The translations under genes were made by a program, and so were the position numbers. A DNA stretch of 63,074 bases, counting the filler, from Octopus bimaculoides (lineage: Eukaryota), in the NCBI RefSeq assembly GCF_001194135.2. It is 7 parts of 7 records of this genome, joined end to end, with 100 filler letters (N's around TTAATTAATTAA, not from the genome) between each part and the next. Parts side by side here need not be neighbours in the genome. Positions count along the whole stretch, not along the records: positions 23,317 to 28,987 come from NC_069001.1; 6 more parts are not named here. The stretch is one strand, 5' to 3'. The notes below the pieces were generated by a model that did not search any database, was not told the origin of the DNA, and saw only the letters and a list, made by a program, of their open reading frames with translations. Positions 23,317 to 47,208 of the stretch are shown here, in pieces. How positions within the stretch are numbered: the first letter of the stretch is position 1; the number at the start of each line of letters is the position of its first letter.

Positions 23317-23349
<33 letters not shown>

Positions 23350-23924
23350 TACGACGGGCTTCTTTCAGTTTCCGTCTACCAAATCCACTCACAAGGCTTT
23401 GGTCGGCCCGCGGCTATAGTAGAAGACACTTGCCCAAGGTGCCAGGTAGTGGGACTGAACCCGGAACCATGTGGTTGGCAAGCAAGCTACTTACCACACA
23501 GCTACTCCTGCGCATACTGTTTATTTAATTAGAAAATCTGATCTCACAAGAATACTCTACAATTTACATATTTTCATTCGTAGATATTTTTCTGAAGAAA
23601 GGTAAAAATGAAGAATATACGACACAGAGAAATAAATGTTAAGATTTTCAGACAAATCGTTAAAATAATTTTCATAGTTTGAAATTTAATGAAAACGTTT
23701 GTTTAAATATTCAGGTTTTCTTGCTTTTAAATATAACCTGGAAAAATAAAACGTAAAATTTCAATATTATCATACATGAACTCTGAAGATTGTGTGATAA
23801 GAAATGGAAACGTTGCACTTTCTGAACGACCACTATCAAGACTATACGTACGTATGGGTACGTGTATATGCATGTGAGTGTATGTATATGGTGTCTGTGA
23901 TGTGAAATGTATGTGTGCGCGCGC

Positions 23925-24236
23925 GAAGGCAGGTGGCTTAGCGGTTAAGGCATTTGGTTCACAATCCTAAGGTTGTGAGTTCGATTCCGGGTAGTGCGTT
24001 GTGTCCTTGAGCAAGACACTTTATTTCACGTTGCTCCATTCCATTCAGCTGGCAATAATGTGTAGTACCTGTAATTCAAAAGGACCAGCTTTGTCACGTA
24101 CCGTTTCGTGCTGAATCTCCCTGAGAACTACGTTGACGCTAAGCGTGTCTGCGGAGTGCTCAGCCACTTGCAGGTCAATTTCACGTGCAGGCTCTTACGC
24201 TGATCAGATCACCTGGAACAATCGTCGTCGTAACCA
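23925..24236 (+). mobile_element. SINE with a tRNA-like head, a CORE-like tgtgtccttgagcaagacact segment and a 3' half shared with family C
   Basis: A-box-like tggcttagcgg and B-box gagttcgattcc. Related heads lie at about 47875-48040 and 53590-53801. Confidence 0.75.
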
Positions 24237-24863
24237 ACGGAAAGCCAGTGTGCATACATATGCATATATGTGTATAAGTGTATGTATGTATGCATATGTG
24301 TATGTATGTATAGACTGCTGGAAGCAGTATACAGATTCTATATATTAAGAAAAAGAAGTTAGTCACGATTTGGATAAAGAATATTTATTTAGCGCTTGTG
24401 ACCCTTTTCCGAATTATTGTAAATCCCTAAAATGGATTAAAGTGTTAAATAGTTTTTATCCAAAATCAACTTCCTTTGTTTCATATATATNNNNNNNNNN
24501 NNNNNNNNNNNNNNNNNNNNNNNNNNNNNNNNNNNNNNNNNNNNNNNNNNNNNNNNNNNNNNNNNNNNNNNNNNNNNNNNNNNNNNNNNNNNNNNNNNNN
24601 NNNNNNNNNNNNNNNNNNNNNNNNNNNNNNNNNNNNNNNNNNNNNNNNNNNNNNNNNNNNNNNNNNNNNNNNNNNNNNNNNNNNNNNNNNNNNNNNNNNN
24701 NNNNNNNNNNNNNNNNNNNNNNNNNNNNNNNNNNNNNNNNNNNNNNNNNNNNNNNNNNNNNNNNNNNNNNNNNNNNNNNNNNNNNNNNNNNNNNNNNNNN
24801 NNNNNNNNNNNNNNNNNNNNNNNNNNNNNNNNNNNNNNNNNNNNNNNNNNNNNNNNNNNNNNN

Positions 24864-24926
<63 letters not shown>

Positions 24927-24976
24927 ACGTATGTATACAAAGAAAAAGAGCGTTTGCAATGTCCATTGTAACATAC

Positions 24977-25157
24977 CTAACGTTATACGTTCTTTAGAAT
25001 CTGGCGGTAACAAGAACAGAAAAGGAACCAGCACACCGATTAGCATAGCGGGGAAAACAAGCACGTGACTGAAATACGCTGACTTCCGGCGCAAAACAAA
25101 TGTGACGCGATAGCTGGGATAGGGCTCCACGCAACAGGTGTACATTTTGATGTTTAC
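24977..25157 (-). CDS. nAChR-like subunit exon (loop C, M1, M1-M2 linker)
   Basis: Acceptor tttttgtcacAG and donor TTAG|gtatgt, phase 0 in and phase 1 out. Translates VNIKMYTCCVEPYPSYRVTFVLRRKSAYFSHVLVFPAMLIGVLVPFLFLLPPDSKERITL(G). The YxCCxEPY motif marks an alpha-type subunit. M2-M4 exons were not found. Confidence 0.96.
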
Positions 25158-25289
25158 CTGTGACAAAAAGTACAAAAACATATTCTGGTTTCAGTTCAGT
25201 GCTGACGTGATGACAGAATGACGGTAACAAAAAAATCATAGCCATAGAAACAACAACAACAACAATAATGCCCGGATGCAGGCAGTGGC

Positions 25290-25819
25290 TCTCATGGCTT
25301 TTCATCTTAACTGATTGGAAGTGTTATTATGTACATTGTCTTGTCTTGGTATAAAAGATGGGCTACAGCAAATATTCTGCTCAATACCACAGATTTGCTT
25401 GTCAGTTGTTTGACCTTAACTAGTTGAGCATGTCTCTTAGTGGGTGACGATATGTGCATCTCTGATCACGAGCAGAAGTAGTGGGGGAGCATCATAGACG
25501 TGTATTGGGAAGAAATCTTTGGGGTTTGAGCAATTCACCTCTGAAAATATGGGTGTTTTGCTCAACATCCTTAAACAATCCTCATTTAGGCACCTTTTGG
25601 GCGGGATGGGCTACTCGACCTGAATGAAATTCTAACTGGGCCCCTCCTGCAAGTTCATGCGCCGTTTATCTTGATATTAGATTACAATATCACACATATA
25701 TGGTTGTGATGCATGTGCCCGGTGTAACCCTTATCAGAAGGGTAGTCATAATGGATATATTGAGTTTCGTATATTTGTACTCCAGTGTCCCTTTGAAGGC
25801 ATGCGCTGCTCTCTCACTC

Positions 25820-25822
<3 letters not shown>
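25290..25822 (-). mobile_element. Interspersed repeat next to an (AAT)n tract, inside an nAChR intron
   Basis: 25680-25822 is the reverse complement of 13140-13280 (ttattgagtgagag...ataagggtacacc...catgcatca). Both copies abut a (TTA/AAT)n microsatellite. Confidence 0.65.
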
Positions 25823-25890
<68 letters not shown>

Positions 25891-25950
25891 TAACAGTAAC
25901 AACAACAATAATAATAATAACAATAATAATAATAATAATAATAATAATAA
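25820..25950. repeat. (AAT)n/(AAC)n microsatellite
   Basis: Directly visible. It accounts for the poly-L/N/Y ORFs in the track. Confidence 0.95.
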
Positions 25951-26262
25951 TTTTGGCACAAGGCCAGCAATTTCGGGTGAGGGACTAAGTCGATTATATC
26001 AATATCAGTAATCAACTGGTATTTATCTTAACGACCCTTACAAGATGAAAGGTAAACTCGACCTCAGCTGAATTTGAACTCAGGACGTAAAGACGGATGA
26101 AATGATGGTAAGCATTTCACCCGGCATGCTAACGTCTCTGCCAGCTCGAATAATACACACACACACACACACACACATTCATGCACACACATACTCACAT
26201 ATGCGCGCGCGTACACACACGTAAGCATGACAACAATAACAGTAAGAGTTATCTCTCCTTAC

Positions 26263-26530
26263 TTCGGTTTCTGCGCTGACGAGTTCCCATTTGTTGTTTG
26301 GTACATAATCTGAAGTAACAAGCGAACTGAAATGTGAGGAGATGTTTACTTCCAGACCGTTGTACACCATCGATCCGTAAATCAAGTTGCACGTCTGTGT
26401 GTCGAATGGGAATTTTGACATATCAGGTACACAAACTGCCGTCTCAACCAATCGGTGCATGTAGAATACACTGCCAGAGTTTAGCACAAGCACGTCGTCG
26501 TTGGCGGTAGAAGGAATAGCCTGTTCGACA
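26263..26530 (-). CDS. nAChR-like subunit exon (Cys-loop and loop B)
   Basis: Acceptor ttttgtcaacAG and donor GAA|gtaagg, phase 2 in and phase 0 out. Translates (F)VEQAIPSTANDDVLVLNSGSVFYMHRLVETAVCVPDMSKFPFDTQTCNLIYGSMVYNGLEVNISSHFSSLVTSDYVPNNKWELVSAETE, with the C-x13-C Cys-loop and FPFD. Confidence 0.96.
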
Positions 26531-26687
26531 CTGTTGACAAAATAGAACACAGATGAAAAGACAATAATTTTTGGCAGATAAACTGTAGTGGTGGTCATTA
26601 GCTATTGTAATTATACACTCTGATAAAAATCACAGAACGGACTAGATTGAAATGCAGGGTAGTATAGATATAAATTTGTTGTAAAGA

Positions 26688-26737
<50 letters not shown>

Positions 26738-26742
26738 ATACA

Positions 26743-26807
<65 letters not shown>

Positions 26808-27156
26808 GCATATATATATGTATGTATATACATGTTTATACCCAAACATACATATAATGATAGAATATTGCTTGTACGATGTTTGTAGCATATTGTGTGC
26901 AATATATTATATTGTGTTGGTTTGGTTTCGTTGAAATTATTTTTAATAAATTAAACTTGAAATAACTGAATATCATTAGATATTCTTGTATTTCTTCATT
27001 TTTTCTGTGTTTGTATTAATTGCACACTTCTTTGATTGTTTTTGTTGCTATGTACTTTCACACTTTGTTTGGAACACACTTTTCCCCCTTGTTTGTATCG
27101 CTTTCTTTGATTGGTTATCTACTCTTAATCATAATTTTAACCCGTTATTTGTGTGC

Positions 27157-27195
<39 letters not shown>

Positions 27196-27729
27196 GTGCA
27201 TGTAGATTTATATAAGGGAAGCACCCAATGCTACAGTTACTGACAGATTGCCTCCCTTTACTCATTCAGACCTTTCGTCATCGTCATCATCATCATCATC
27301 GTTTAGCATCCGTTTTCCATTCTGGCATGGGTTGGATGGTTTGACTGAGGTCTTGAGAGCCAGCGGTTGCACCAAGCTCCAATCTAAGTCTTTGTTTTAC
27401 CCGTTAGGTCACGAATTTTCGTTTGCACTTTCTTATAAACAAGATGACTGAGCTGTCATTAATATTTTCCCCACTACTATTCAATAACTGCGATATTGCT
27501 CGCATGAAACCATTGATATCTTATTCAATGCAGTCTTCTAGTTAAGAAAAATATATTAATCCGCCTATGAGGTATTGACCGCTTGCTTTCTAGTTTGTAA
27601 CTTACGTTTACGTGAGTGTGTATGTGAAATTTAGATTGTAAAGGGGAATGCATTCCTAATCGAATAAAATTCTACAATTTTTTTTTGCAGATATGCTTCG
27701 ATATACCAAGACTGAAGTTTTGGACTTAC

Positions 27730-27884
27730 AAGTTGTAAAGAACTATATCAGGATACCAAATATTTTGCACAGGAATTCGGATATTTTCTTGGTTGTTGTA
27801 TTCACTGGGCTTCCAATGAAATCTGGCATCGTCCCAGGTTTTTGTGAGATATCCATGGATTTTAAATGTCATCGAATGTTCATC
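27730..27884 (-). CDS. nAChR-like subunit exon (loop D region to loop A)
   Basis: Acceptor t-rich caatAG and donor TT|gtaagt, phase 0 in and phase 2 out. Translates DEHSMTFKIHGYLTKTWDDARFHWKPSEYNNQENIRIPVQNIWYPDIVLYN, containing the WxPDIxLYN loop A motif. Not reported as such by the ORF track. Confidence 0.95.
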
Positions 27885-28699
27885 CTATTGAAAAAAAAAA
27901 AGAAAAATCAAATGTAGGAAGCATTGGTAAGGAATTAGTGGGAGAAAGAAAGAAAGAAAAGACATGGATTTGGAGAAGGAGAAGAAGAAAGAAAGGTGGT
28001 GATTGTAGTGGTTGTGGAAGAAGAAGAACGATCGTCGATGTTGGTGGAGAAGATATTCGTAAAAGGTTTTCCATTTAAACTGAATTTAAAGTAATTAATT
28101 TCTTATTAATTTCTTTATTGACCACAAGGGGCTAAACATAGAGGGGACAAACAAGGAGAGACAAAAGAATTAAGTCGATTACATCTTCCCTAGGGCGTAA
28201 CTGGTACTTAATTTATCGACGCCGAAAGAATCAAAGGCAAAGTCGACCTCGGCGGAATTTGAACTCCGAACGTAACGGCAGACGAAGGGTACCAATAAAT
28301 GCTTTATTCTTATCACTCTCTTTAGTTGTGGGCCGCAGGCCAATTAGGCCCTCCGCAGGAACTCTCAAAAGTCCACAAGGAGTGTGTCGTTTAAGTTAGT
28401 ATGTATATATATATATATATACAAATATATAATGATTACGCTTAGATATAGTGATACCAAAACTACCTGTTTATAGCTCAACAGACTTTTATGTCACAGC
28501 AAATTAGTAAGGTCCTGAACTGTGGCGAGGCTGCATAAATATTTTAGTTGTTTTCCGCTCCACTGGACTCATATATAAACCAGCAAGTCATTAGAGAGAG
28601 AGAGAATGAGAGAGAGTACAGATTGATGACTAAATTAATGATACAAGAATTGGTAGTTACGGAGAAAGAGAGAGAGAGAAAGAGAAATAAAGAGGTTAC

Positions 28700-28851
28700 C
28701 AGGTCAACAGTATGTGGAGAAAGTTGCAAGTTAACGAGAACCGGTCCGTTGACGGAAGGTCTGACGTGTCGGTTGTAATTCGTGAGGAGGGTGTGGTACA
28801 AATGTCCTTCTGTTTCAATCAACGTTAAATTCGGTTTTGCCTTCAGCCATT
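28700..28851 (-). CDS. nAChR-like (Cys-loop) subunit, first visible exon (N-terminal helix, beta1-beta2)
   Basis: Acceptor tttgcaacAG (phase 1) and donor CTG|gtaacc (phase 0). Translates (E)WLKAKPNLTLIETEGHLYHTLLTNYNRHVRPSVNGPVLVNLQLSPHTVDL, matching the nAChR LYxxLLxNYNxxxRP motif. The signal-peptide exon was not found. Confidence 0.93.
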
Positions 28852-28987
28852 CTGTTGCAAAATAAACAAATAAATAAATAAATAAATAAATAATAAACAA
28901 TACAGTATGACATTAAGAGATACACGTTTATATTTTATACATACGTACATATATATATATATACCACATCGTTTTCTCTCTCTCTCT

Positions 28988-33913: not shown

Positions 33914-34558
33914 ATATGTGTGTGTGTGTGTGTGTNNNNNNNNNNNNNNNNNNNNNNNNNNNNNNNNNNNNNNNNNNNNNNNNNNNNNNNNNNNNNNNNN
34001 NNNNNNNNNNNNNNNNNNNNNNNNNNNNNNNNNNNNNNNNNNNNNNNNNNNNNNNNNNNNNNNNNNNNNNNNNNNNNNNNNNNNNNNNNNNNNNNNNNNN
34101 NNNNNNNNNNNNNNNNNNNNNNNNNNNNNNNNNNNNNNNNNNNNNNNNNNNNNNNNNNNNNNNNNNNNNNNNNNNNNNNNNNNNNNNNNNNNNNNNNNNN
34201 NNNNNNNNNNNNNNNNNNNNNNNNNNNNNNNNNNNNNNNNNNNNNNNNNNNNNNNNNNNNNNNNNNNNNNNNNNNNNNNNNNNNNNNNNNNNNNNNNNNN
34301 NNNNNNNNNNNNNNNNNNNNNNNNNNNNNNNNNNNNNNNNNNNNNNNNNNNNNNNNNNNNNNNNNNNNNNNNNNNNNNNNNNNNNNNNNNNNNNNNNNNN
34401 NNNNNNNNNNNNNNNNNNNNNNNNNNNNNNNNNNNNNNNNNNNNNNNNNNNNNNNNNNNNNNNNNNNNNNNNNNNNNNNNNNNNNNNNNNNNNNNNNNNN
34501 NNNNNNNNNNNNNNNNNNNNNNNNNNTTTTTTTTTTTTTTTTTTCTTTCTTTCTACAG

Positions 34559-34645
34559 ACCCAAAAAATCCTCTTTAAGCATGTCAAATGAGAAACCAGC
34601 TGAATGTACTGACACATCGAATGATAAAGAATCCGGCATCATCAA
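34559..34645 (+). CDS. Unidentified plus-strand gene, internal exon C
   Basis: Poly-T tract + ctacAG and donor CAA|gtgagt. 87 nt, phase 2/2: PKKSSLSMSNEKPAECTDTSNDKESGII(K). Confidence 0.72.
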
Positions 34646-35236
34646 GTGAGTAGGCTCCCCAATCTCAGGCCATTTGGTCTCATATGAGACGTATCGGCAC
34701 AGCTGTTTTGGCCCTGCCGCTATATGGCGGCACTGATTCAGCTCTGACTTGTATGATATCAGACACCCTAACATTTCTCTTGTTCTCTCTGTTTATTTGT
34801 GCAAATAGACTCCATGTTAATCATGTCCACTCGATAATGTGTAATGTACGTGTGTGTGTGTGTATGTTTATTTGTCTGTGACTATACATGTGTGTGTGTG
34901 TGTGTGTCTATCTGTATGTAAGTGATTGTATATGTGTGTATGAGTATGTCAATTTGTATGTAAGTGATTATACGTGTGTGTGTGTGTGTATGTCTATTTG
35001 TAAGTGATTGTACATGTGTGTGTGTATGTCTATCTGTATGTAAGTGATTGTACATGTGTGTGCGTATAGCCATCTGGTTCACCAGTCCTCATGGAAAGCG
35101 GACGTTAAACGATGATGATGATGCTGTTTGCGTATGTCTATTTGTATGTAAGTGATTGTGTATGTGTGTATGTGTGTGCATTTATACACCCAGTCCTGTA
35201 TCCATCCTCATATATGCCTCTAAATTGTTGTTTCAG

Positions 35237-35323
35237 AAAACGAAAGTCTCACCTGACACCTACCAGTGCCAAACTGTATGAGTGGACCGATTCCCCAGAT
35301 GATGAATGTACTTCTCTTAGCCC
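35237..35323 (+). CDS. Unidentified plus-strand gene, internal exon D
   Basis: Acceptor ttgttgtttcAG and donor CCC|gtatgt. 87 nt, phase 2/2: KRKSHLTPTSAKLYEWTDSPDDECTSLS(P). The three exons 33360-35323 splice into one stop-free frame. Confidence 0.72.
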
Positions 35324-35550
35324 GTATGTAAAAAATCTTTAATTTACACACACACACTTATTCAAACACGAATTTAAAATTCTTTAATATAATCATATTA
35401 CCAAATATTCAAAGCAAAAAAAAAAATATTCATTCAACTTCAATCACACGTTAGTTTTTAAAACTCTTCCAAATATGTTGGCACTCCGTCGCTTACGACG
35501 TCGAGGGTTCCAGTTGATCCGATCAATGGAACAGCCTGCTCGTGAAATTA

Positions 35551-35650
35551 NNNNNNNNNNNNNNNNNNNNNNNNNNNNNNNNNNNNNNNNNNNNTTAATT
35601 AATTAANNNNNNNNNNNNNNNNNNNNNNNNNNNNNNNNNNNNNNNNNNNN
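35551..35650. other. Artificial 100-bp scaffold spacer
   Basis: 44 N + TTAATTAATTAA + 44 N. It truncates a family C SINE. Confidence 0.95.
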
Positions 35651-36984
35651 TATATATATATATATATATATATCTATGTGTGTGTGTGTGTATCAAAACA
35701 AATACACAACCAAAAGATCTACTGATAGTTTCATTCTATTATGATACTTGAAGAGGCATATTTATAAAATATGCCATGTATCTTAAAACAAGCTTTCATG
35801 CTCTTTTTATGCATTATATATAATTTTCAAAAACAAAGTGTGTTCTACATGGGTAGAAATATAGAAGAAAGAAGTTGAAAATGCACCAAGATTCATTTAA
35901 ATAAAATCATTTAATAGGCAAATTTGATGCCTGCATGCACAGACACAAACCATAACTATTCAGTCACTAGACTACATGGAAACAATTCCTGTTCACTCTA
36001 CCACTTGACAGATTAAATTTAGAGAACCTTATTCTGAGACTGTCACTAGACATGTTCATTCAACTGTATCAATCTTGATTTTCAGGACAAAAAATATTGT
36101 CACATATTAATAGGGAAGTAGTAGGAAACCTACAAAAATTTTAAAGATTACTACTGATCACAAAATCTTTCTCTACTACACCTGACAGATAATTTTGAGA
36201 CAGCCCTGACTGCTAAGGATTGTCACTAGACATGCTCACTCAACCATGACAGTTTTAACTAACAACACCAAACATATTGTCACATGGCATTAAAGAAAAG
36301 ACATAGTGGAGACTTTGCAAAAATTTCTGAACCTGATCTCATGATCATCCTGGACCAATCAAAACATATCCAAAATAGATATGTTTGATTGTTTATTGTA
36401 TGACATTGTAGGGTAGGTGTGAGATGCTAGATCTGGCCAGTCTGAACATAGAACAGGTAGAGTATTTGGGACTGACATGTTTGGTTTGAATATAAAATGG
36501 TTAATCATGTTACATTCTTTTCACTCTAGCAAATTTATCTACCCACCCTTCTGTTCATCTATCCTACCCCCCTCTCTCTCTCTCTCATATTTCCCTTATA
36601 CATTGACCTTACATGCTCTCTCTCTCTCTCTCTCTCTCCCTCTCTAGATGGGGAAGCCATGTTTCACCTGTTCAGTAAGAAATTTGTTCCTGTCACTACT
36701 CTATCATACTTTCATACCACATTCAGTTGAGGGGTTTTGTCTTGCAAGTGATCTCACCAATGCTGGTACCACAAACACTCTGTGAAGTGGTTGGCATTAG
36801 GAAGGGTATTTAGCTGTAGAAACCATGCTGCAGCAAAAACTAGAGCTTGGCATAGTCCTCTGGTTCATTAGTTCATGCTGAACCATTCAACTCATGCTGT
36901 GGAAAAAGGAGATTAAATGATGATGATGATATATACACATACACATATATGGTCCTGTGTAAGTATGTATGTATATGTATGTGA

Positions 36985-37018
<34 letters not shown>

Positions 37019-37379
37019 GCATACATACAGAAACACACACACAAATATATATGTATATACATATATATATGTATACACAGATAAATGGGCATAAACATGT
37101 ACATATATACATATATATACTTCCCACACCTACCACCCCTCCTTACTCCCCCCCAATCACGTGACTGATATCTTGTCCACCACATAGTTGATTTCCTGTT
37201 CACTACACAGTTGATTTCCTGGTCTCCATGTAGTATTTCCTATCTAATCGTTGTTGCTGAAATACTAACACCAATACGGTGTGACATTTCTCAACCGTTG
37301 CAGGCTAATGTCCAGTAATAAACATTGACTCTCAGGCAATATGATATGCTTAAGAACTGTTGAGACAACTAAAACCAAT

Positions 37380-37862
37380 ATCGTAGGTGTCACCAGTGCC
37401 CCCTGGCTGGCTACCATGCTGCTGACACATAAAAGCACCATCTGAACATGGTTTATGCCAGGTCCACCTGACTGGCTGTCATGCCGGTGGCATGTAAAAA
37501 GCACCATCCAAATGTGGCTGATGCCAGTACCCACTGACTGACTCCTGTGCTGGTCGCATGTAAAAAGCACCATCTGAACATGGCTGATGCCCATATCCAC
37601 TGACTGGCCCCAGTGCTGGTGGCATGTAAAAAGCATTATCTGAATTTGATTGATGCTAGCCCCACCTGACTGGCTCCTGTGCCTGTGGCACGTAAAAGGC
37701 ACCCACTACACTCTTGGAGTGGTTGGTATTAGGAAGAGCATTCAGCTGTAGAATCATTGCCAGATCAGATTGGAGCCTGGTGCAGCCAATGGCTCTCTAG
37801 ACCTCAGTCAAACCGTCCAACCCATGCCAGAATGGAAACGGATGTTAAACGATGATGATGAT
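37380..37862 (+). mobile_element. Retroposon 3' segment (family D) with an internal 66-bp tandem array and a (gat)n tail
   Basis: The tail ttggt.ttaggaag.gcat.cagctgtag...ccatgc.agcatgga.a..gga.gttaaacgatgatgatg also occurs at about 31449-31595, 36770-36930 and 40560-40700, and in reverse at about 27290 and 32550. Confidence 0.7.
37420..37705. repeat. 66-bp tandem repeat, about 4.5 diverged units
   Basis: aaaagcacc recurs with its g at 37435, 37501, 37567, 37633 and 37699. Confidence 0.9.
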
Positions 37863-39800
37863 GATGTATGTATATATATATATATATATATATATNNNNN
37901 NNNNNNNNNNNNNNNNNNNNNNNNNNNNNNNNNNNNNNNNNNNNNNNNNNNNNNNNNNNNNNNNNNNNNNNNNNNNNNNNNNNNNNNNNNNNNNNNNNNN
38001 NNNNNNNNNNNNNNNNNNNNNNNNNNNNNNNNNNNTTCTTAGCTTTCTTTCATCAGTCAAGTCCCAGAAGTCATGACTATTTCGGGCAGTTACACTTGAG
38101 ATGGTTTGATCTGGTTGCCCCCAAAAAAGTCTAAGGTAAGAGCATCAGCCCCTTTTGTAAGAATAGTGAATGTGTACGGCAACAAAGACAAAAAAAAAAA
38201 AAAAAACCGAGAACATGGTACACAATTACGAATACAAACAACAAGAAATAACAACTGGTGTCTTTCGACTGAGAACGAATCAAAGTGAGCTGCCATTTAT
38301 GAAGTGAAAGCCTAAAGGTAGGAACATAGGAGATGGACACAAGATGTGTTGGTGGTTGGCAGTCAGGTTAAGAAAGATCATGGCTGGCCGGACACTGGTC
38401 ACGTGGAAGGAGGGGAGATGGGTAGGGGGCAGCAGGATTGAAGGATTAGAAAAAAAAAATCAGAGACAAAGAGAAAGGTACAGGGTAGATAAACGATAGG
38501 GAAATAGTGGGAGTTAAAGAGAGATGGCCAAGAAATGTGAGAAAGGGGGAGCGAGAAAAAGGAATAAAAATGAGAGGGGGAATAAAATATAGAATAAAAG
38601 TCATACAAAATTTAGATACACAACAAATACAGATATATATGCATACACAAACACATTTATATATAAATATATATATATGCGTGTGTGTGTGTGTGTGTGT
38701 GTGTGAGATGAAGAGTGAAAACACATTTTGTTTGTATTTTACTGAATTAAATTATTTCTAAGTGAATTGTTAAAATCAAATTGTTTCAAAATAATGACTG
38801 GCTTTAAGCCTTCAGTTAAGACAGACAGATATACTACAGCACAATGACGGCGGGGTAGCAACATTATAAATACATTAAGATATCTACATTATTGATATCT
38901 CCATCAGTGACCTATTTTTTTCATAAATATACTAGATAACAAGAGAAGTCACGTTATGTACTTTAAATATTCAATGTGAAATGGAGCATATATTTTCAAA
39001 AAATGTTGATATTTGAATTAAACATAAGTGTCATAATTGATTATTGAATAAAATTTGGCTATATTTCGCAATAAAAAGAAAGTTCTTTTATATTTTTCTT
39101 GTTCTGTCATATTTGTTGGACATTGGTAAATAGTTTAAAATTTGGCTGTAAATTCCCCACACAGAGGACTCATAGGGGGATTGGTCACAATAGAAGTGGC
39201 TCAGAAGGTGTGGAAAATGTAGTAGAGAAGCATAAAGTGGGTAAAAAGTAAAGGAGATGCACAAGAGAGAAGGGATTATAGAGACATGAGGATGTGTTAC
39301 TGCAGTTTCTTATACATAGGTCTAACGAGAGAATGAAGGTGATATATGATTTTCGGAGGTTACTTTAAGTTTTTGCATATACGTACATATACATTTGGTA
39401 CCAAATGAGACAGAAACATGTATCCATGACTGACTTATTATCACGCGATAATAAGACTGTCTCTTTCCTTAATGAAAATCTTGAGATTTTCTGCCCTTCT
39501 CATATGGAGCTAGTCTTCATTGTCATTTGGTACTTGTACCATATCCACAAGAGACAGAGATGATTTTAACAAATAAAAAAAATTATGTTCTATGGTATTT
39601 AATATACCTGTCTTTGCCTATGCTGTTGATATACAAGCCACTGACCATGCTGGATTATTTCTCTTAACTAAACTAATTTCTGCTTAATTAATTAATTTAT
39701 GCCTGCCTGACTGCCTGCCTACATACATACATACATATACAAGGAAGACCATTGCTGACCTTCAGGAACATTGTGCGCTCTACGACTAACTTACACTAAC

Positions 39801-39985
39801 TTATATTTTGCATTTGTGGCTCCGTTGGTGGCTGATGAGCCCTGCTCTCAACAAGCATACATGACTGCAAACATTGCAAACCAAGCTTTCCTCATTCACT
39901 ACACCAGCAGTGCACTTTCGAGCAGCACGCTTAAGTTCTTCATGCAGAGTACGTGCTCTCTCAAAAGTGTCACCCCACTTCCATA
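39801..39985 (-). mobile_element. RTE-like LINE 3' end with terminal C2H2 finger
   Basis: FERARTLHEELKRAARK...LVCNVCSHVCLLRAGLISHQRSH. Confidence 0.65.
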
Positions 39986-40735
39986 CATACATGCATACAT
40001 ACATCTCATCATCATCATCATCATCATTCTAATGCCCATTTTTCTATGCAAGGAAAGGTTGCCCAGAATTTGTTGAGCTAGATTTGCTATGGCCAGAAAA
40101 TTTTCCTGTCACCAACCGTCATCTGTTTCCCAGCAATGTAATATTTCCGCACACCATGGCCCGACAGGCTTTCATAGAAAATTGGAAACAAAAACAAGCA
40201 TGTATGACAATGACAATCATTTACAACTTTGAATGTCACTACAAGGAGACAGTAGCACACATGTGTACACACACAATGTACACACACATGTGCGTGTGCA
40301 GACACACATACACACACTGAAGGGCAAGCTCAGGATACTGAACCTTACAGAGGAAACGACGAAGGACCAAGATATCTGGCACATTGCTGTACTCAAGAAG
40401 ACCTGTCCTCCACACGAGAAGTGTTAAAGCTGCTCCTTCCTGATGAAGAGGATTGCCCTGAAAGAGCCCTGTGTTGGTGTCAGGTAAAAGGCATTTGTGC
40501 TGGTGCCATGTAAAAAACAGTTGTGCCAGTGCCACATTAAAAGCACCCAGCATAAAATGTAAAGTGGTTGGTGTTAGGAAGGGCATCCAGCCACAGAAAC
40601 CAAGCCAAACCAAACTGGAAATAGGTGCAGCTCTGGCTTGCCAGCACTGATCAAACTGTCCAACCCATGCCAGCATGGAAAACAGACATTATATGATGAT
40701 AATAATGTATAATGATGATGACAACAGGGTGTGTA

Positions 40736-40820
<85 letters not shown>

Positions 40821-41560
40821 GCAGTGAGCTTGCACAATCGTTAGCACGCTGGGCGAAATGCTTAGCAGTATTTCATCAACCGTTATGTTCTGAGTTCAAA
40901 TTCCACTGACGTTGACTTATCCTTTCAGGGTCGATTAAATACGTACCAGTTGCATACTGGGGTCGATGCAATAGACTTAATCTCTTTGCTTGTCCTTGTT
41001 TGTCCCCTTTATGTTCAGCCCCATGTGGGCAATAAAGAAATACACATATATATAACAAATGAAAGACAGAAGATGGAATATACGAGAATTTATTATTAAT
41101 CACGACAATCGCTTTGACACAGCTAGCATCAATCCTTCTTGGGTAGGACACTCAACAACTGGCTCGGAGCATTTGATGGTGCAGATGTATCTCAGTGGAT
41201 AATAAATAAATAAATAAATAAATACAACTTGTTAAAATGACTGTCCCGCAATGTAACTTTCAATTTTGTAGAGAGAAAAACAGCCAGACGGTGGAAATAA
41301 CTTCATTTATATGGGAGATCAAAGATAAAATCACAGATGACAAAAAGAGAAACGAACATGCAATCCAGCAAGAAAAGTATATATATATATATATATACAT
41401 ACATACACACACACACACGTGACAGACTTCTTTCAGTTTCTTTTGTGCGAATCCACACAAGGCCTTGGTGAAACAGAGGCTATAGTAGAAGACAAACCAA
41501 AGAGTCATGCGATGGAACTGAAACTAAAACCAAGTGATTGAGAAGCAAATTTCTCATCTA

Positions 41561-41767
41561 TATATAACAAAACAGGAAACTGTTCATTTTTTGGTATTAT
41601 TTTCTTCACCATCACATGTGTTTCATTTGCTAACAGGAATTACAAGGAATTTGTGATAAGAAATTCCTTACATGCCTATCTAACATGTAAAACATTTAGC
41701 AAATGAAATGTGTGTAATGGTGAATAAATAGTACCAAACAATTTGCAATTTCCTGTTTTGTTATGTG
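41561..41767. mobile_element. MITE-like element with about 72-bp imperfect terminal inverted repeats and a nested internal hairpin
   Basis: ataacaaaacaggaaa...tttcatttgctaa pairs with ttagcaaatgaaa...tttcctgttttgttat. The internal hairpin is aaggaattt/aaattcctt, and the ends are TA-rich. Confidence 0.7.
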
Positions 41768-42554
41768 ATAACTCTGAAAGTAATATTTCCAAATATTTCC
41801 ATATTTCTCAATTCTAATATGTATTATTAACTGGACTGCAATAATAGAATAACCAGATGTGCTTCAAGAAGGAACAGCTGGGACTTACCCTAACTAAAAC
41901 AATATACATACACATATATATATATATTTATATATATCATTCAACTATAGTAGTAGTTGAATAATATTCTTAAGGCCACAATTTCCTCACACGCAGCATC
42001 TTTCAGAGCTTGTCGCTAACTCAGTTCTTAACCAAATTGAAAACTCTTAACATTTTTGAAGAGTGCTGGTCCCTAGCTACATTTTGGCATTAAAGAAATT
42101 GATATTTGACCCAGTAGAAAAAAGTTTACATCAAAAGTTGTAGCAACGTTATAGGAGAGTAAGTAACACCACCAATACAACTTTAGATCTAAATAACTTT
42201 TTATATATATTTACCTCATATAATATATTTATCTTAGCTTCAATGATAGAAGAAAGCATGAAGAATTTTATAGTTTTGATTCCATGCAACAAAAATCTGT
42301 ATAAAAGAACTTGTGAGGTACATACAATATCACGAGAAAATATAACCAAAGCAAAAAAGTATAATTAAGTTCTTCATTTTAAAAGCAAACTATATTTTAA
42401 TTAACCTTGAATGATAGAGCTCAATTCAAGGAATTTTATTGTATCAATCTCATGCAATGAAGTTCTAAAAGTAAAAAGTTATGAGTTTTTCTTTCTTTCT
42501 CAAATTTGAAGGGTGATAATATAGTTCTATACATTTTTAGAGGCATCAAGCTGT

Positions 42555-42932
42555 TAGATCAGGTTATGAAAGTTACAACTAATTAGGGAGCGAATCAATT
42601 TAGATGAGATGCAGTTTGGGTTCGTGCCAGGTAAAAGCACTACTGATGCCGTATTTCTAGTGAGACAGCTGCAGGAGAAATACCTAGCTAAGGATAAACC
42701 TCTGTACCTGGCTTTCGTTGACATGGAGAAAGCCTTTGACAGGATCCCCCGATCCCTTATCTGGTGGTCAATGAGGAAACTTGGGATAGAAGAATGGTTA
42801 GTGAGAGCTGTGCGAGCCATGTACAGAGATGCTGCCAGTAAGGTGAGGGTTGGAAATGAGTACAGCAATGAATTCCGGGTAGAGATAGGGGTCCACCAAG
42901 GTTCCGTCCTCAGCCCCCTCTTATTTATCATA
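42555..42932 (+). mobile_element. RTE-clade LINE reverse transcriptase fragment, stop-free, truncated at an assembly spacer
   Basis: QFGFVPGKSTTDAVFLVRQLQEKY...LYLAFVDMEKAFDRIPR...GVHQGSVLSPLLF (RT motifs). Confidence 0.93.
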
Positions 42933-43032
42933 NNNNNNNNNNNNNNNNNNNNNNNNNNNNNNNNNNNNNNNNNNNNTTAATTAATTAANNNNNNNNNNNN
43001 NNNNNNNNNNNNNNNNNNNNNNNNNNNNNNNN
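42933..43032. other. Artificial 100-bp scaffold spacer
   Basis: 44 N + TTAATTAATTAA + 44 N. It truncates the RTE RT fragment. Confidence 0.95.
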
Positions 43033-44117
43033 ACAGTTTATACCACACTTCACTCAGAATCTTTCCTGCGTTGGATTTTGAGCCTACAGGGGACTTCGTA
43101 AGTACGTGAGTGTCCGTACCCACTGTTAAGATACAGGTGCGTGGTCCCCGACTTTACCTTGAAGCCTTTATTATTAAAATATCTTGATTATATTGTGAGG
43201 GTGCCTGGCATATGCGTTCCTTTGATTAGAATTTGGAACCTTTACATATTCTAATAACGGCTTCTACACAAAGAACGCATCACCATCGTATGCGGTTAGA
43301 AGTTCGCTTCCCAACCACATGGTTCCAGGCTCAGTTCTACTGTGTGGCACCTTGGGCAAGTGTCTTCTATTATAGCCTCGGGCCGGCCAAAGCCTTGCGT
43401 GTGGATTTGGTCGACGGAAACTGAAAGAAGCCTGTCGTATATAAATATATATGTGCGTGTGATGTACACACACACACACGCATACACAAACACAGACACA
43501 CATTTCTGTGTATCTTTGTGCTTGTGTTTGCCCCCAATCACCGTTTGACAACCGGTGTTGGTGTGTTTACGCCCCTGTAACTTAGCGGTTCGGCAAAAGA
43601 GACCGATAGAATAAATACCAGTAAAAATATAATAGAACCCAGTAAAAAATTAAAAGAAATAGATAGTCTGAATCCGATTAGAATTTCTAGGTTATAGGTT
43701 CGAAACCCCGCTTCACTCAAAAGAAGGTTTACATTTTGTATATCTTAGAAATGCATGTTCGCTTGTGTGTGTTTGTAAGACTCCGATGCAGTGACTTGGT
43801 CGAGCTGCGCTGTAAGTGATTGCTGTATCATTTTTTGTGGCTGTAGTAAGCAAGCTGCATCAGTGTGAGAGAGATAAGTTGATTTTAAAGGAGGGAATTG
43901 NNNNNNNNNNNNNNNNNNNNNNNNNNNNNNNNNNNNNNNNNNNNNNNNNNNNNNNNNNNNNNNNNNNNNNNNNNNNNNNNNNNNNNNNNNNNNNNNNNNN
44001 NNNNNNNNNNNNNNNNNNNNNNNNNNNNNNNNNNNNNNNNNNNNNNNNNNNNNNNNNNNNNNNNNNNNNNNNNNNNNNNNNNNNNNNNNNNNNNNNNNNN
44101 NNNNNNNNNNNNNNNNN

Positions 44118-44195
<78 letters not shown>

Positions 44196-44200
44196 TAGAA

Positions 44201-44236
<36 letters not shown>

Positions 44237-44334
44237 GGGGGAGAGAGAGAGGGGGAGAGAGAGAGAAAGAGAGAGAGGGAGAAAGAGAGAGAGGGAGAAA
44301 GAGAGAGAGAAGGAGAGAGAGGGAGAAAGAGAGA

Positions 44335-44370
<36 letters not shown>

Positions 44371-44832
44371 CAACCTGAAATTAAAGACCTTGTCAACCCC
44401 TCTAACAGCACTCGAGTGTAGACCAAAGACCATTTCTTTTCTGGATTCATAAGCAGTCTTTGGCTTCCAAATTTACATCCAATTATATTTAACAGATGTA
44501 AATAACCATCGTCCTTTTGATTTATTTATCTTATCACTACATTGTTCTTTATCTGCAGTTATCGTCATATCACTACATTATGGAACTGTTATCTCTGTCT
44601 CTTTTAGCTGTTTATAGTATGTACCTACTGTTTATTCATCTTCTTAAAACTGTTCTCTGTCTTCTTTTAAACCAAATTCCTTTTAGATGTATAATTTATC
44701 TGCTGTTGTTTTTCAATTCTAAATTATATTTGCCTAAGCGTTATCATTTTAGTTTTGTACAATATCTAGCTGAAATTTCTATATAAGTTGTAATGTTATA
44801 CAGCTGTACGTATGCCTGTGTTGTACAGTTGT

Positions 44833-45202
44833 TGTTGGCACTCCGTCGCTTACGACGTCAAGGGTTCCAGTTGATCCGATCAACGGAACAGCCTGCTCGT
44901 GAAATTAACGTGCAAGTGGCTGAGCACTCCACAGACACGTGTAACCCTTAACGTAGTTCTCGGGGATATTCAGCGTGACACAGTGTGACAAGGCTGACCC
45001 TTTGAATTACAGACACAACAGAAACAGGAAGAAAGAGTGAGAGAAAGTTGTGGTGAAAGAATACAGCAGGGTTCGCCACCATCCCCTGCCGGAGCCTCGT
45101 GGAGCTTTTAGGTGTTTTCGCTCAATAAACACTCACAACGCCCGGTCTGGGAATCGAAACCGCGAGTCCGCTGCCCTAACCACTGGGCCATTGCGCCTCC
45201 AC
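44833..45202 (-). mobile_element. SINE family C (tRNA-derived head) with a 12-bp TSD
   Basis: Minus-strand head gtggaggcgcaatggcccagtggttaggg...gtttcgattccc (A and B boxes) and a (caa)n tail. TSD ttgtacagttgt at 44821-44832 and 45203-45214. Confidence 0.92.
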
Positions 45203-46479
45203 TTGTACAGTTGTAGAAGCTGTGTTAATGTGAGAGCTGTATGTTTTGTATGTAGTTGTCGTGGTGCACTTCATATGTAATTCTTTATATTATCTTCGCC
45301 ATTGAAAGGTTACAAATGTTTTGATATGTCCTGTCAATATTTCTTTCTGGTGTCGTCTTTTGGCTTCCATTTGTCCAGGGGTTAGGGTTTCAAGCAGCCT
45401 CGACTTCAGGTATGTCTTCTGAGACTATAAAAGATTTTACGCTTAACCAAACAGTGCTTTTCACAATTGATTTACAGTTGTCATACCTGCTGCAATGAAG
45501 GACAAAATTTGGTGCAGCATCAGATTGAATGAATAACAAAATCCTTTGGTTCCCATGATAGTGGTTCCGGAAAATAAAGCATTTCTGTGAATTCTTCAAG
45601 TGTAAGAAATTCCGGTTTCCAAGACTTGCAGAGCTCTGAACCAATTTTTCAGTACAATCAGCTCTAAAAACCAGCGGGAAAATAGTGACTGAGACGAGCG
45701 GAAAATAAGTGTATTTACGTTTTCCTAGGGGGAAATTCTAATAAGAACCTGGGATCCTTCTATCAAGGTGGTTCATCTGCTTATTGACCATTAGCTGGGA
45801 CCTTAACCGGTGCTATTACTCTTGGTCAGAGTAAACTTAGGGACAATCTTGACCGACAGGTGAGTTCAAAAAAGCAAACATGCAAAAAAAAAAAAACCAC
45901 TTCAAGACATACATATATACATAGACACACATACACACATACACACACATATACACACATGCACATACTCGTGCATACATCCATACACACAAGCATGCAG
46001 CTGGGTATGCATACACAAACGCTCATATATGTGTAAATGTGCATATGTGCATGCAAGCGCATATGTGTATGTACGTGTCTTCGCAGAATTGGTGTATCGG
46101 TATAGACGAACATACATACACACAAGCATATATAGATACATACAATCAATTTTTTTTTTCTCCGTGTTTTTCTCCTTGTTTTTCTCCTTATTCTTTCTGT
46201 TGAAGAGCGTAGCTCGAAACNNNNNNNNNNGTATTCCCGAGCGTCATACTAATATATCCTTTTGTTATTTACACCACCTGTCCTCGTCTGTTGTTATTTT
46301 TTGTATATTCTCCCCCATAGATACATACAAACATGTATATCTGTGCATGCGTGCCCTTACTTGTGTGTATGTGTGTGTATGATTGTGTTTACAGGTATTG
46401 CGTGTGAATTATAAACATAAACACACACCATACACACTCATGTATATACACACAGACATATATACATAAATATACACAT

Positions 46480-46634
46480 ACGCAAATATATATATATATA
46501 TATATATACATATACATACATTTATATGTAAATATATGTATATATGCATATATATATATTCATATACATATATCTATGTACATATCTATACATACATATA
46601 TATATATATACATATATATTATATATATGTATAC

Positions 46635-46686
<52 letters not shown>

Positions 46687-47208
46687 NNNNNNNNNNNNNN
46701 NNNNNNNNNNNNNNNNNNNNNNNNNNNNNNNNNNNNNNNNNNNNNNNNNNNNNNNNNNNNNNNNNNNNNNNNNNNNNNNNNNNNNNNNNNNNNNNNNNNN
46801 NNNNNNNNNNNNNNNNNNNNNNNNNNNNNNNNNNNNNNNNNNNNNNNNNNNNNNNNNNNNNNNNNNNNNNNNNNNNNNNNNNNNNNNNNNNNNNNNNNNN
46901 NNNNNNNNNNNNNNNNNNNNNNNNNNNNNNNNNNNNNNNNNNNNNNNNNNNNNNNNNNNNNNNNNNNNNNNNNNNNNNNNNNNNNNNNNNNNNNNNNNNN
47001 NNNNNNNNNNNNNNNNNNNNNNNNNNNNNNNNNNNNNNNNNNNNNNNNNNNNNNNNNNNNNNNNNNNNNNNNNNNNNNNNNNNNNNNNNNNNNNNNNNNN
47101 NNNNNNNNNNNNNNNNNNNNNNNNNNNNNNNNNNNNNNNNNNNNNNNNNNNNNNNNNNNNNNNNNNNNNNNNNNNNNNNNNNNNNNNNNNNNNNNNNNNN
47201 NNNNNNNN

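Follow-up and report, generated by a model that had tools for sequence, protein, structure and literature searches.

What becomes of a nicotinic acetylcholine receptor (nAChR)-like subunit when the Trp of loop B, normally the main cation-pi partner of acetylcholine (ACh), has been replaced? This question is raised by a gene in a 63,074-nt stretch of Octopus bimaculoides DNA (hereafter the window, along which all plain coordinates count). The piece from 23,317 to 28,987 was analysed, and the gene in it is read on the minus strand. Four minus-strand exons, with AG before and GT after each, splice to 251 stop-free codons, and the encoded peptide carries Met in loop B and Tyr in place of the Trp of loop D. 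The reading we favour, with a probability of about one in two, is that the orthosteric site would still be used, not as a canonical ACh site, and that the channel, either homomeric or formed with paralogues from the same gene cluster, would be gated by a non-cholinergic small molecule.

The spliced peptide was aligned to human alpha7, its best single-sequence match in the PDB (E = 4e-43, HMMER). The Tyr fell on W55 (NIW) and the Met on W149 (GSW). On this alignment the likeness lies far beyond chance, at about 29-30% identity. The two proteins share the fold, the Cys-loop, the loop A Tyr and a loop C with YxCC and a further Tyr, and Y93, Y188, C190, C191 and Y195 of alpha7 are all conserved in the octopus peptide. 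As to the canonical aromatic box, the loop A Tyr and both loop C Tyr are present, while the Trp of loop B (Met) and that of loop D (Tyr) are absent. Further replacements relative to alpha7 are Q117 to F and L119 to M; loop E is hydrophobic in the octopus gene (L, F, M), and its intracellular domain (ICD) is short and different. The C-x13-C Cys-loop marks the product as a nAChR-like pLGIC (pentameric ligand-gated ion channel), and the domains PF02931 and PF02932 are recorded for the O. bimaculoides protein model XP_052831251.1 and for the Argonauta protein. Of the membrane segments M1-M4 (PF02932), M1 lies in the piece, and M2-M4 were read from the spliced O. vulgaris open reading frame (ORF) and the Argonauta orthologue. 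The YTCC of loop C is of alpha type. M2 of the orthologue carries E(-1'), T2', L9' and D20', as in a cationic-type pore. The AF2 model of the octopod orthologue (pLDDT 81.8) has the canonical pLGIC fold with visible transmembrane helices, and the 50 matches listed by Foldseek against the PDB were all nAChR chains.

The sequence-only reading of this DNA had proposed an alpha-type nAChR-like subunit of about 250 stop-free codons over four spliced exons, with canonical loop A, Cys-loop and loop C, loop B Trp changed to Met and loop D Trp changed to Tyr. Splice borders, translated codons and the alpha7 alignment bear it out on each of these points, and its coordinates for the Tyr, Met, CC, Cys-loop and loop A codons are exact to the base. 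One correction is needed: the third exon of the piece begins at 26530, which makes the junction codon Phe (LYNF/VEQ).

That reading had also asked for a check of the loop B codon against raw reads. In two further octopods the codon is ATG, and no TGG was found among the octopod orthologues. Argonauta hians has a full-length orthologue of 472 aa, encoded by eight exons with the same intron positions and 77% identical over the peptide. The gap-free locus of O. vulgaris (L003) also has eight exons, all bordered by GT/AG, with an intact 460-aa ORF and exon sizes of 152/155/268/181 as in the piece. All three species read KIHGY, YGSMVY and YTCC. The loop B codon is ATG in each while the surrounding codons differ synonymously, and the loop D codon is TAT in O. 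vulgaris and TAC in Argonauta. Because the same Met occurs in another assembly (O. vulgaris) and in Argonauta with synonymous change at its flanks, it is not an assembly error. TGG to ATG takes two base changes, and adenosine-to-inosine editing is unable to turn ATG into TGG. Between O. bimaculoides and O. vulgaris we counted 20 synonymous and 2 nonsynonymous differences, a dN/dS (omega) of 0.026; against Argonauta, dN was 0.14 at a saturated pS of 0.81. All 12 pocket positions are identical across the three octopods. Since omega is 0.026 and the Met, the Tyr and the CC pair are kept in three species, neither error nor decay explains the pocket. These codon comparisons mark the Met as genuine, fixed and under selection, in a gene that shows no decay.

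What could be said for a decaying duplicate, or for an assembly or sequencing artefact at the loop B codon, is that the 3' half of the gene is missing from the O. bimaculoides assembly and that both public gene models are defective. The piece corresponds to 34429-40099 of the chromosome locus L001 (in CM046621.1) and is flanked by gaps; N makes up 38% of L001, and a 7-kb gap (40100-47109) follows directly. No M2-M4 exon of the gene was found in the assembled O. bimaculoides sequence by relaxed tblastn, because the 7-kb gap covers the region where they are expected. In O. vulgaris, 3.9 kb separate the 181-nt exon from the M2 exon that follows it, and M3 and ICD/M4 come within a further 3.5 kb (up to 7.5 kb); the corresponding stretch of O. 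bimaculoides is taken up by the gap, where its M2-M4 exons are expected. The piece itself holds exons 2-5, which encode the extracellular domain (ECD) and M1. The 152-nt exon is exon 2 of the gene and has an equal-sized counterpart in O. vulgaris.

The same gap accounts for the O. bimaculoides gene model. XP_052831251.1, a 715-aa 'neuronal acetylcholine receptor subunit alpha-7', is 100% identical over 100% of the peptide when the alignment is used as query; a single-sequence protein search overlooked it, and the negatives of that search are not proof of absence. The model, which spans L001 10001-67431, is a chimera of the ECD and M1 of the present gene, 13 codons of intron read-through and a complete second nAChR-like paralogue. 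The read-through, GMLQWTLQTLFFFV, is the sequence of the window past 24977 (24936-24976). Because the M2-M4 exons fall in the 7-kb gap, two tandem genes have been joined across gaps. The O. vulgaris annotation CAI9738548.1 is defective in a different manner. It lacks the 181-nt loop C/M1 exon, the 268-nt exon being joined to the M2 exon (L003 65920 to 71832), which is then translated in the wrong frame up to a stop (ESPSCWRVCCKYI). The skip reproduces the odd tail of the model exactly, and it may be a real transcript or a prediction artefact. With the missing exons accounted for by the gap, and with an omega of 0.026, an intact O. vulgaris ORF and the Met retained amid synonymous change, a non-functional gene is essentially refuted.

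The second gene of the locus starts from 56 kb of L001 (56091-67428, plus strand), and a third, XP_014769463.1, lies on the opposite strand (74111-77429, minus). XP_014769464.1 is on the same chromosome. The tandem cluster that they make up counts at least four paralogues, all with introns; their pockets are very diverse, but the transmembrane domain (TMD) and ICD are conserved (mean identity 41% versus 56%). Loop B still reads GSW, with its Trp, in paralogues B, C, D and E, which belong to the cluster or share its chromosome. The present gene and paralogue D (P0001/P0204) use near-identical signal-peptide exons.

The relatives of the gene were then collected and placed in neighbour-joining trees (245-433 columns, 200-300 bootstraps). 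The three octopod orthologues group with a bootstrap of 100, and the octopods together with P0011, a transcript-derived protein, form a coleoid orthogroup with 84-99.7. Support reaches 96-99.5 for all cephalopod paralogues and 88 for a pan-molluscan family of bivalves, gastropods, a chiton and cephalopods. P0011 is presumably from a cuttlefish, given the accession series of its cluster-mate CAE1242235.1. Members of the molluscan family are about 450-460 aa long, and their short ICD bears the motif RGPRRxKVP...FLRSLKRLVCLG, whose columns are near-invariant. Both the 88% bootstrap and this shared motif point to a monophyletic family that includes the 'type H' proteins. Tree and motif place the octopus gene, mis-annotated so far, as a new member in a pan-molluscan nAChR-like family that is known but uncharacterised. 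An exhaustive search of 1.84 billion representatives with the 268-nt exon alone as query returned 12 representatives at E <= 1e-10, an isolated group of distant relatives.

The two pocket changes are of different age. Loop D has Trp in 0 of 30 family members; Tyr predominates, with Phe, Leu, Met or Ile in the remainder. Loop B keeps Trp in about half of the family, including P0011 (the probable cuttlefish co-orthologue) and all cephalopod paralogues; heterobranch gastropods have Tyr there, three transcript-derived proteins have Phe, and Met is confined to the three octopods. Among about 150 representatives the loop B Trp is present in almost all, and Met in none outside the octopod orthogroup. 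On these alignments the loop D change is ancient and family-wide, and the loop B Met is an octopod novelty at a repeatedly replaced position. Within the family, loop B Trp has been replaced independently, the gastropod 'type H' version reading FASYVYHG, and the CC pair of loop C is gone in pteriomorph bivalves. Relative to P0011, the octopod pocket also differs by P to M and I to L in loop E and by H to Y at loop B+2; the ECD is 46% identical between them versus 83% for TMD plus ICD. The octopod-decapod split is dated to about 250 million years. O. bimaculoides has about 78 nAChR-like genes (PMC6896357), and published work describes altered binding residues in several molluscan clades; hence a remodelled pocket is not in itself surprising.

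Taken together, this is a functional octopod gene whose product is an alpha-type subunit for a pentameric, cation-selective channel gated by a ligand; it sits in a tandem cluster specific to cephalopods, inside an uncharacterised pan-molluscan family. The loop D Trp is absent across the family, and the loop B Trp became Met in the Octopus and Argonauta lineage. The ECD pocket was remodelled over a conserved channel module and has since been held by strong purifying selection. Ligand specificity would then have changed with this remodelling, in the ancestor of the octopods. Of the earlier proposal of a non-ACh ligand, the general part stands: with both Trp lost under strong selection, a non-canonical or non-ACh function is plausible.

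Known systems give partial parallels. The nearest solved relative is the orphan annelid receptor Alpo4 of Alvinella pompejana (PDB 8BX5 and related), which scored highest in the PDB with the profile of the family (395 bits, full length; among the best 60 listed, alpha4 scored 362, alpha7 331 and 5-HT3A about 250). It is also the only PDB chain that specifically matched the family ICD/M4 (E = 2e-10, complete list of 48 matches), and it shares with the octopus family a KERIT-type M1-M2 linker and a cationic-type pore. Alpo4 and a Capitella protein are sister to the molluscan family with 57% bootstrap, Alpo4 being 29-31% identical. However, Alpo4 retains Trp in loop B and in loop D but has no CC pair in loop C, whereas the octopus protein is the reverse; Alpo4 also has a Met ring at 16', where the octopus protein has Tyr. 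Alpo4 gives no response to ACh or serotonin (PMC10338036).

The 'type H' proteins, so named in the source of a Biomphalaria protein and with relatives in Lymnaea, Aplysia, Physella and Bradybaena, belong to the same family and share its length, ICD motif and loop D Tyr. Their loop B Trp has also been replaced, but by Tyr (FASYVYHG) and not by Met; they are single genes outside any tandem cluster, at 35-40% identity. Literature searches gave nothing relevant on deorphanisation of Alpo4-like proteins or on the octopus cluster, and no functional data for 'type H'. The dopamine-gated cation channels DopC1/DopC2 of Octopus, Aplysia, Daphnia and Apis are nAChR-like invertebrate proteins that ACh does not gate, and they were the nearest well-populated outgroup in our searches. 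An identity with DopC was considered since the next-best matches included a dopamine-gated channel of Daphnia, and it was rejected on identity and trees. The Daphnia pulex protein DAPPUDRAFT_55424 (P0316), which is listed as dopamine-gated, is 38-48% identical to an alpha-10-like clade that includes an O. sinensis protein, versus 27-32% to the octopus gene's family, and the DopC/alpha-10-like clade and this family are separate in the trees. DopC proteins keep the Trp of loop B (SWTYDG) and a conserved loop D, in contrast to GSMVYNG and the loop D Tyr of the octopus gene.

The sequence-only reading had suggested that the gene may stand between neuronal nAChRs and sensory receptors such as the chemotactile receptors (CRs) of the octopus sucker, and this idea is not supported, as the loop D Trp loss is family-wide and predates cephalopods, the gene has at least eight exons, and the PDB lists obtained hold no CR chain. 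The CRs of octopus and squid (CRT1, CR840, CRB1) are nAChR-derived and expanded in cephalopods, and they do not use a canonical ACh pocket, as is probable for the present gene too. In PMC13174522 (citing van Giesen 2020), they are reported as intronless retrogenes; four exons lie in the piece and eight were found in both O. vulgaris and Argonauta. No CR chain was among the best 60 matches of five PDB searches or in the complete 48-match ICD/M4 list, with the presence of 8EIS (CRT1) in the searched set unconfirmed. Several proteins were tried as CR candidates and rejected: P0142, with a loop B Leu, is alpha7-like; P0126 and P0140 are nematode proteins; P0133 is another cluster paralogue. One likeness remains, to CRT1. 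Its Y58 and L153 are under purifying selection, L153 forming the 'back wall' of the pocket, and its L153M mutant still responds to norharmane, with half-maximal effective concentrations of 158 versus 76 µM. By consistent numbering offsets to alpha7, Y58 is probably the loop D position and L153 the loop B position, so that the Tyr/Leu of CRT1 would parallel the Tyr/Met of the octopus gene. In loop C, the listed mutants of CRT1 give E190-L191-F192, whereas the octopus gene keeps YTCC.

Published trees have a 'CR-like' clade of broad molluscan range, which the taxonomic spread of the present family fits, and a further group that is sister to CRs. Together with the likenesses above and the hydrophobic loop E, this could be taken to mean that the gene is a CR-like sensor for poorly soluble ligands, or belongs to the intron-bearing parent lineage of the retroposed CRs. 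We consider this very unlikely, since the gene has eight exons where CRs are reported as intronless, Tyr in loop D goes back to the ancestor of the molluscan family as a whole, the CC pair is kept and no CR is among the PDB matches listed. A bolder version is quite unlikely as well: the octopod ancestor would have re-tuned an ancient orphan receptor, in which loop D already had Tyr, to a non-cholinergic, possibly hydrophobic ligand by exchanging the loop B Trp for Met, converging on or sharing the Tyr/Leu pocket of CRs, with the cluster as the CR-like parent of the retroposed genes. Nothing in the comparisons made here ties the gene specifically to the 'taste-by-touch' receptors of the octopus.

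Two other explanations keep the gene closer to neuronal receptors. As an accessory or structural subunit, it would have no principal-face agonist site of its own and would tune the channels of the GSW paralogues B, C, D and E, in the manner of vertebrate alpha5 and beta3. At least four such paralogues belong to the cluster or share its chromosome, conservation of the TMD/ICD module extends across them, and Octopus DopC2 is reported to give no homomeric channel. Yet the pocket positions are invariant among octopods, the ECD is very strongly constrained and the alpha-type CC pair is kept, which makes this role rather unlikely. Alternatively, the product may be a cholinergic neuronal subunit, gated by ACh or choline, in which the Tyr of loops A, C1, C2 and D would give the cation-pi contacts. 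The equivalents of Y93, Y188, Y195 and the CC pair are present, loop D is aromatic, and the best PDB sequence matches are alpha7 and alpha4; alpha7 makes its cation-pi contact with ACh through TyrA and not TrpB. On the other side, the loop B Trp is near-universal among the roughly 150 diverse representatives and both Trp are gone in the octopus gene, while Alpo4 has both Trp and nevertheless does not respond to ACh. A cholinergic function is thus improbable.

Several points weigh against the favoured reading of a non-cholinergic channel. Our literature searches yielded no expression or functional data for the gene or any family member, and no transcript-derived octopod copy was among the protein-collection matches. 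Retention of the CC pair and of three aromatic-box Tyr leaves room for cholinergic gating of the TyrA type. Strongly conserved pockets occur in accessory subunits too. The integrity of the 3' half in O. bimaculoides, where it is absent from the assembly, is deduced from O. vulgaris, whose sole annotation skips the 181-nt exon. Finally, the link to Alpo4 is weak, at the bootstrap and identity given above.

The features of the piece are collected in Table 1. No exon was found in 23317-24490 by tblastn. Copies of the intronic repeats, which resemble short interspersed nuclear elements (SINEs), are many in the loci of both Octopus species (75-94% identity), with some in Argonauta, and no tRNA-like gene or fold was found in them by ARAGORN. 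One (TG)n run adjoins the 373-N assembly gap and probably explains it. The signal-peptide exon lies outside the piece, at L001 10001-10084, about 24 kb upstream of the first ECD exon, and in O. vulgaris at L003 10001-10085, about 51 kb upstream; both assignments come from gene models only, and a closer, unannotated first exon is possible.

Table 1. Features of the analysed piece, in coordinates of the window
Feature	Position	Strand	Content or basis
Coding exon, 152 nt	28700..28851	-	End of N-terminal helix and beta1 of the ECD; AG/GT, open frame, tblastn
Coding exon, 155 nt	27730..27884	-	beta2, loop D (KIHGYLTKTW), loop A (WYPDIVLYN); the same 155-nt exon occurs in O. vulgaris and Argonauta
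Loop D codon TAT (Tyr)	27849..27851	-	Aligned to alpha7 Trp55
Loop A WYPDIVLYN	27732..27758	-	Translated codons
Coding exon, 268 nt	26263..26530	-	Loop E, Cys-loop, loop B, loop F; the same 268-nt exon occurs in O. vulgaris and Argonauta
Cys-loop CVPDMSKFPFDTQTC, C-x13-C	26389..26433	-	Cys codons 26433-26431 and 26391-26389
Loop B codon ATG (Met, GSMVY)	26368..26370	-	Aligned to alpha7 Trp149
Coding exon, 181 nt	24977..25157	-	Loop C (YTCCVEPY), M1, start of M1-M2 linker (PPDSKERITLG); 181-nt exon in O. vulgaris
Vicinal cysteines TGT TGC of loop C	25131..25136	-	Alpha-type signature; translated codons
Assembly gap, 373 N	24491..24863	.	In intron after the 181-nt exon
Intron sequence 3' of the gap	23317..24490	.	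Mostly dispersed SINE-like repeats, with 75-94% identical copies elsewhere in O. bimaculoides/O. vulgaris loci
SINE-like repeats in introns	23317..23530, 24061..24249, 25944..26220, 28103..28286		
Long intronic microsatellites	25820..25951, 24864..24922, 26689..26856, 27159..27198		(AAT)44, several (TG)n, (ATAT)n

These results first correct the record: the RefSeq 'alpha-7' is a two-gene fusion and the O. vulgaris model is shortened by a skipped exon, and octopus nAChR-like gene counts and trees built on these models will err at this locus. They also temper the view that a degraded ACh pocket makes any octopus nAChR-like gene a stage on the way to CRs, because the loop D loss predates cephalopods. 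For the family itself, one orthogroup carries either Trp (probable cuttlefish) or Met (octopods) at loop B on an 83%-identical channel module, and the octopod-specific Trp-to-Met change under tight constraint is a good, if modest, target for deorphanisation. As Tyr and Phe occur naturally at the same loop B site in other members, residue swaps would reveal the role of this site in a non-cholinergic nAChR-like receptor.

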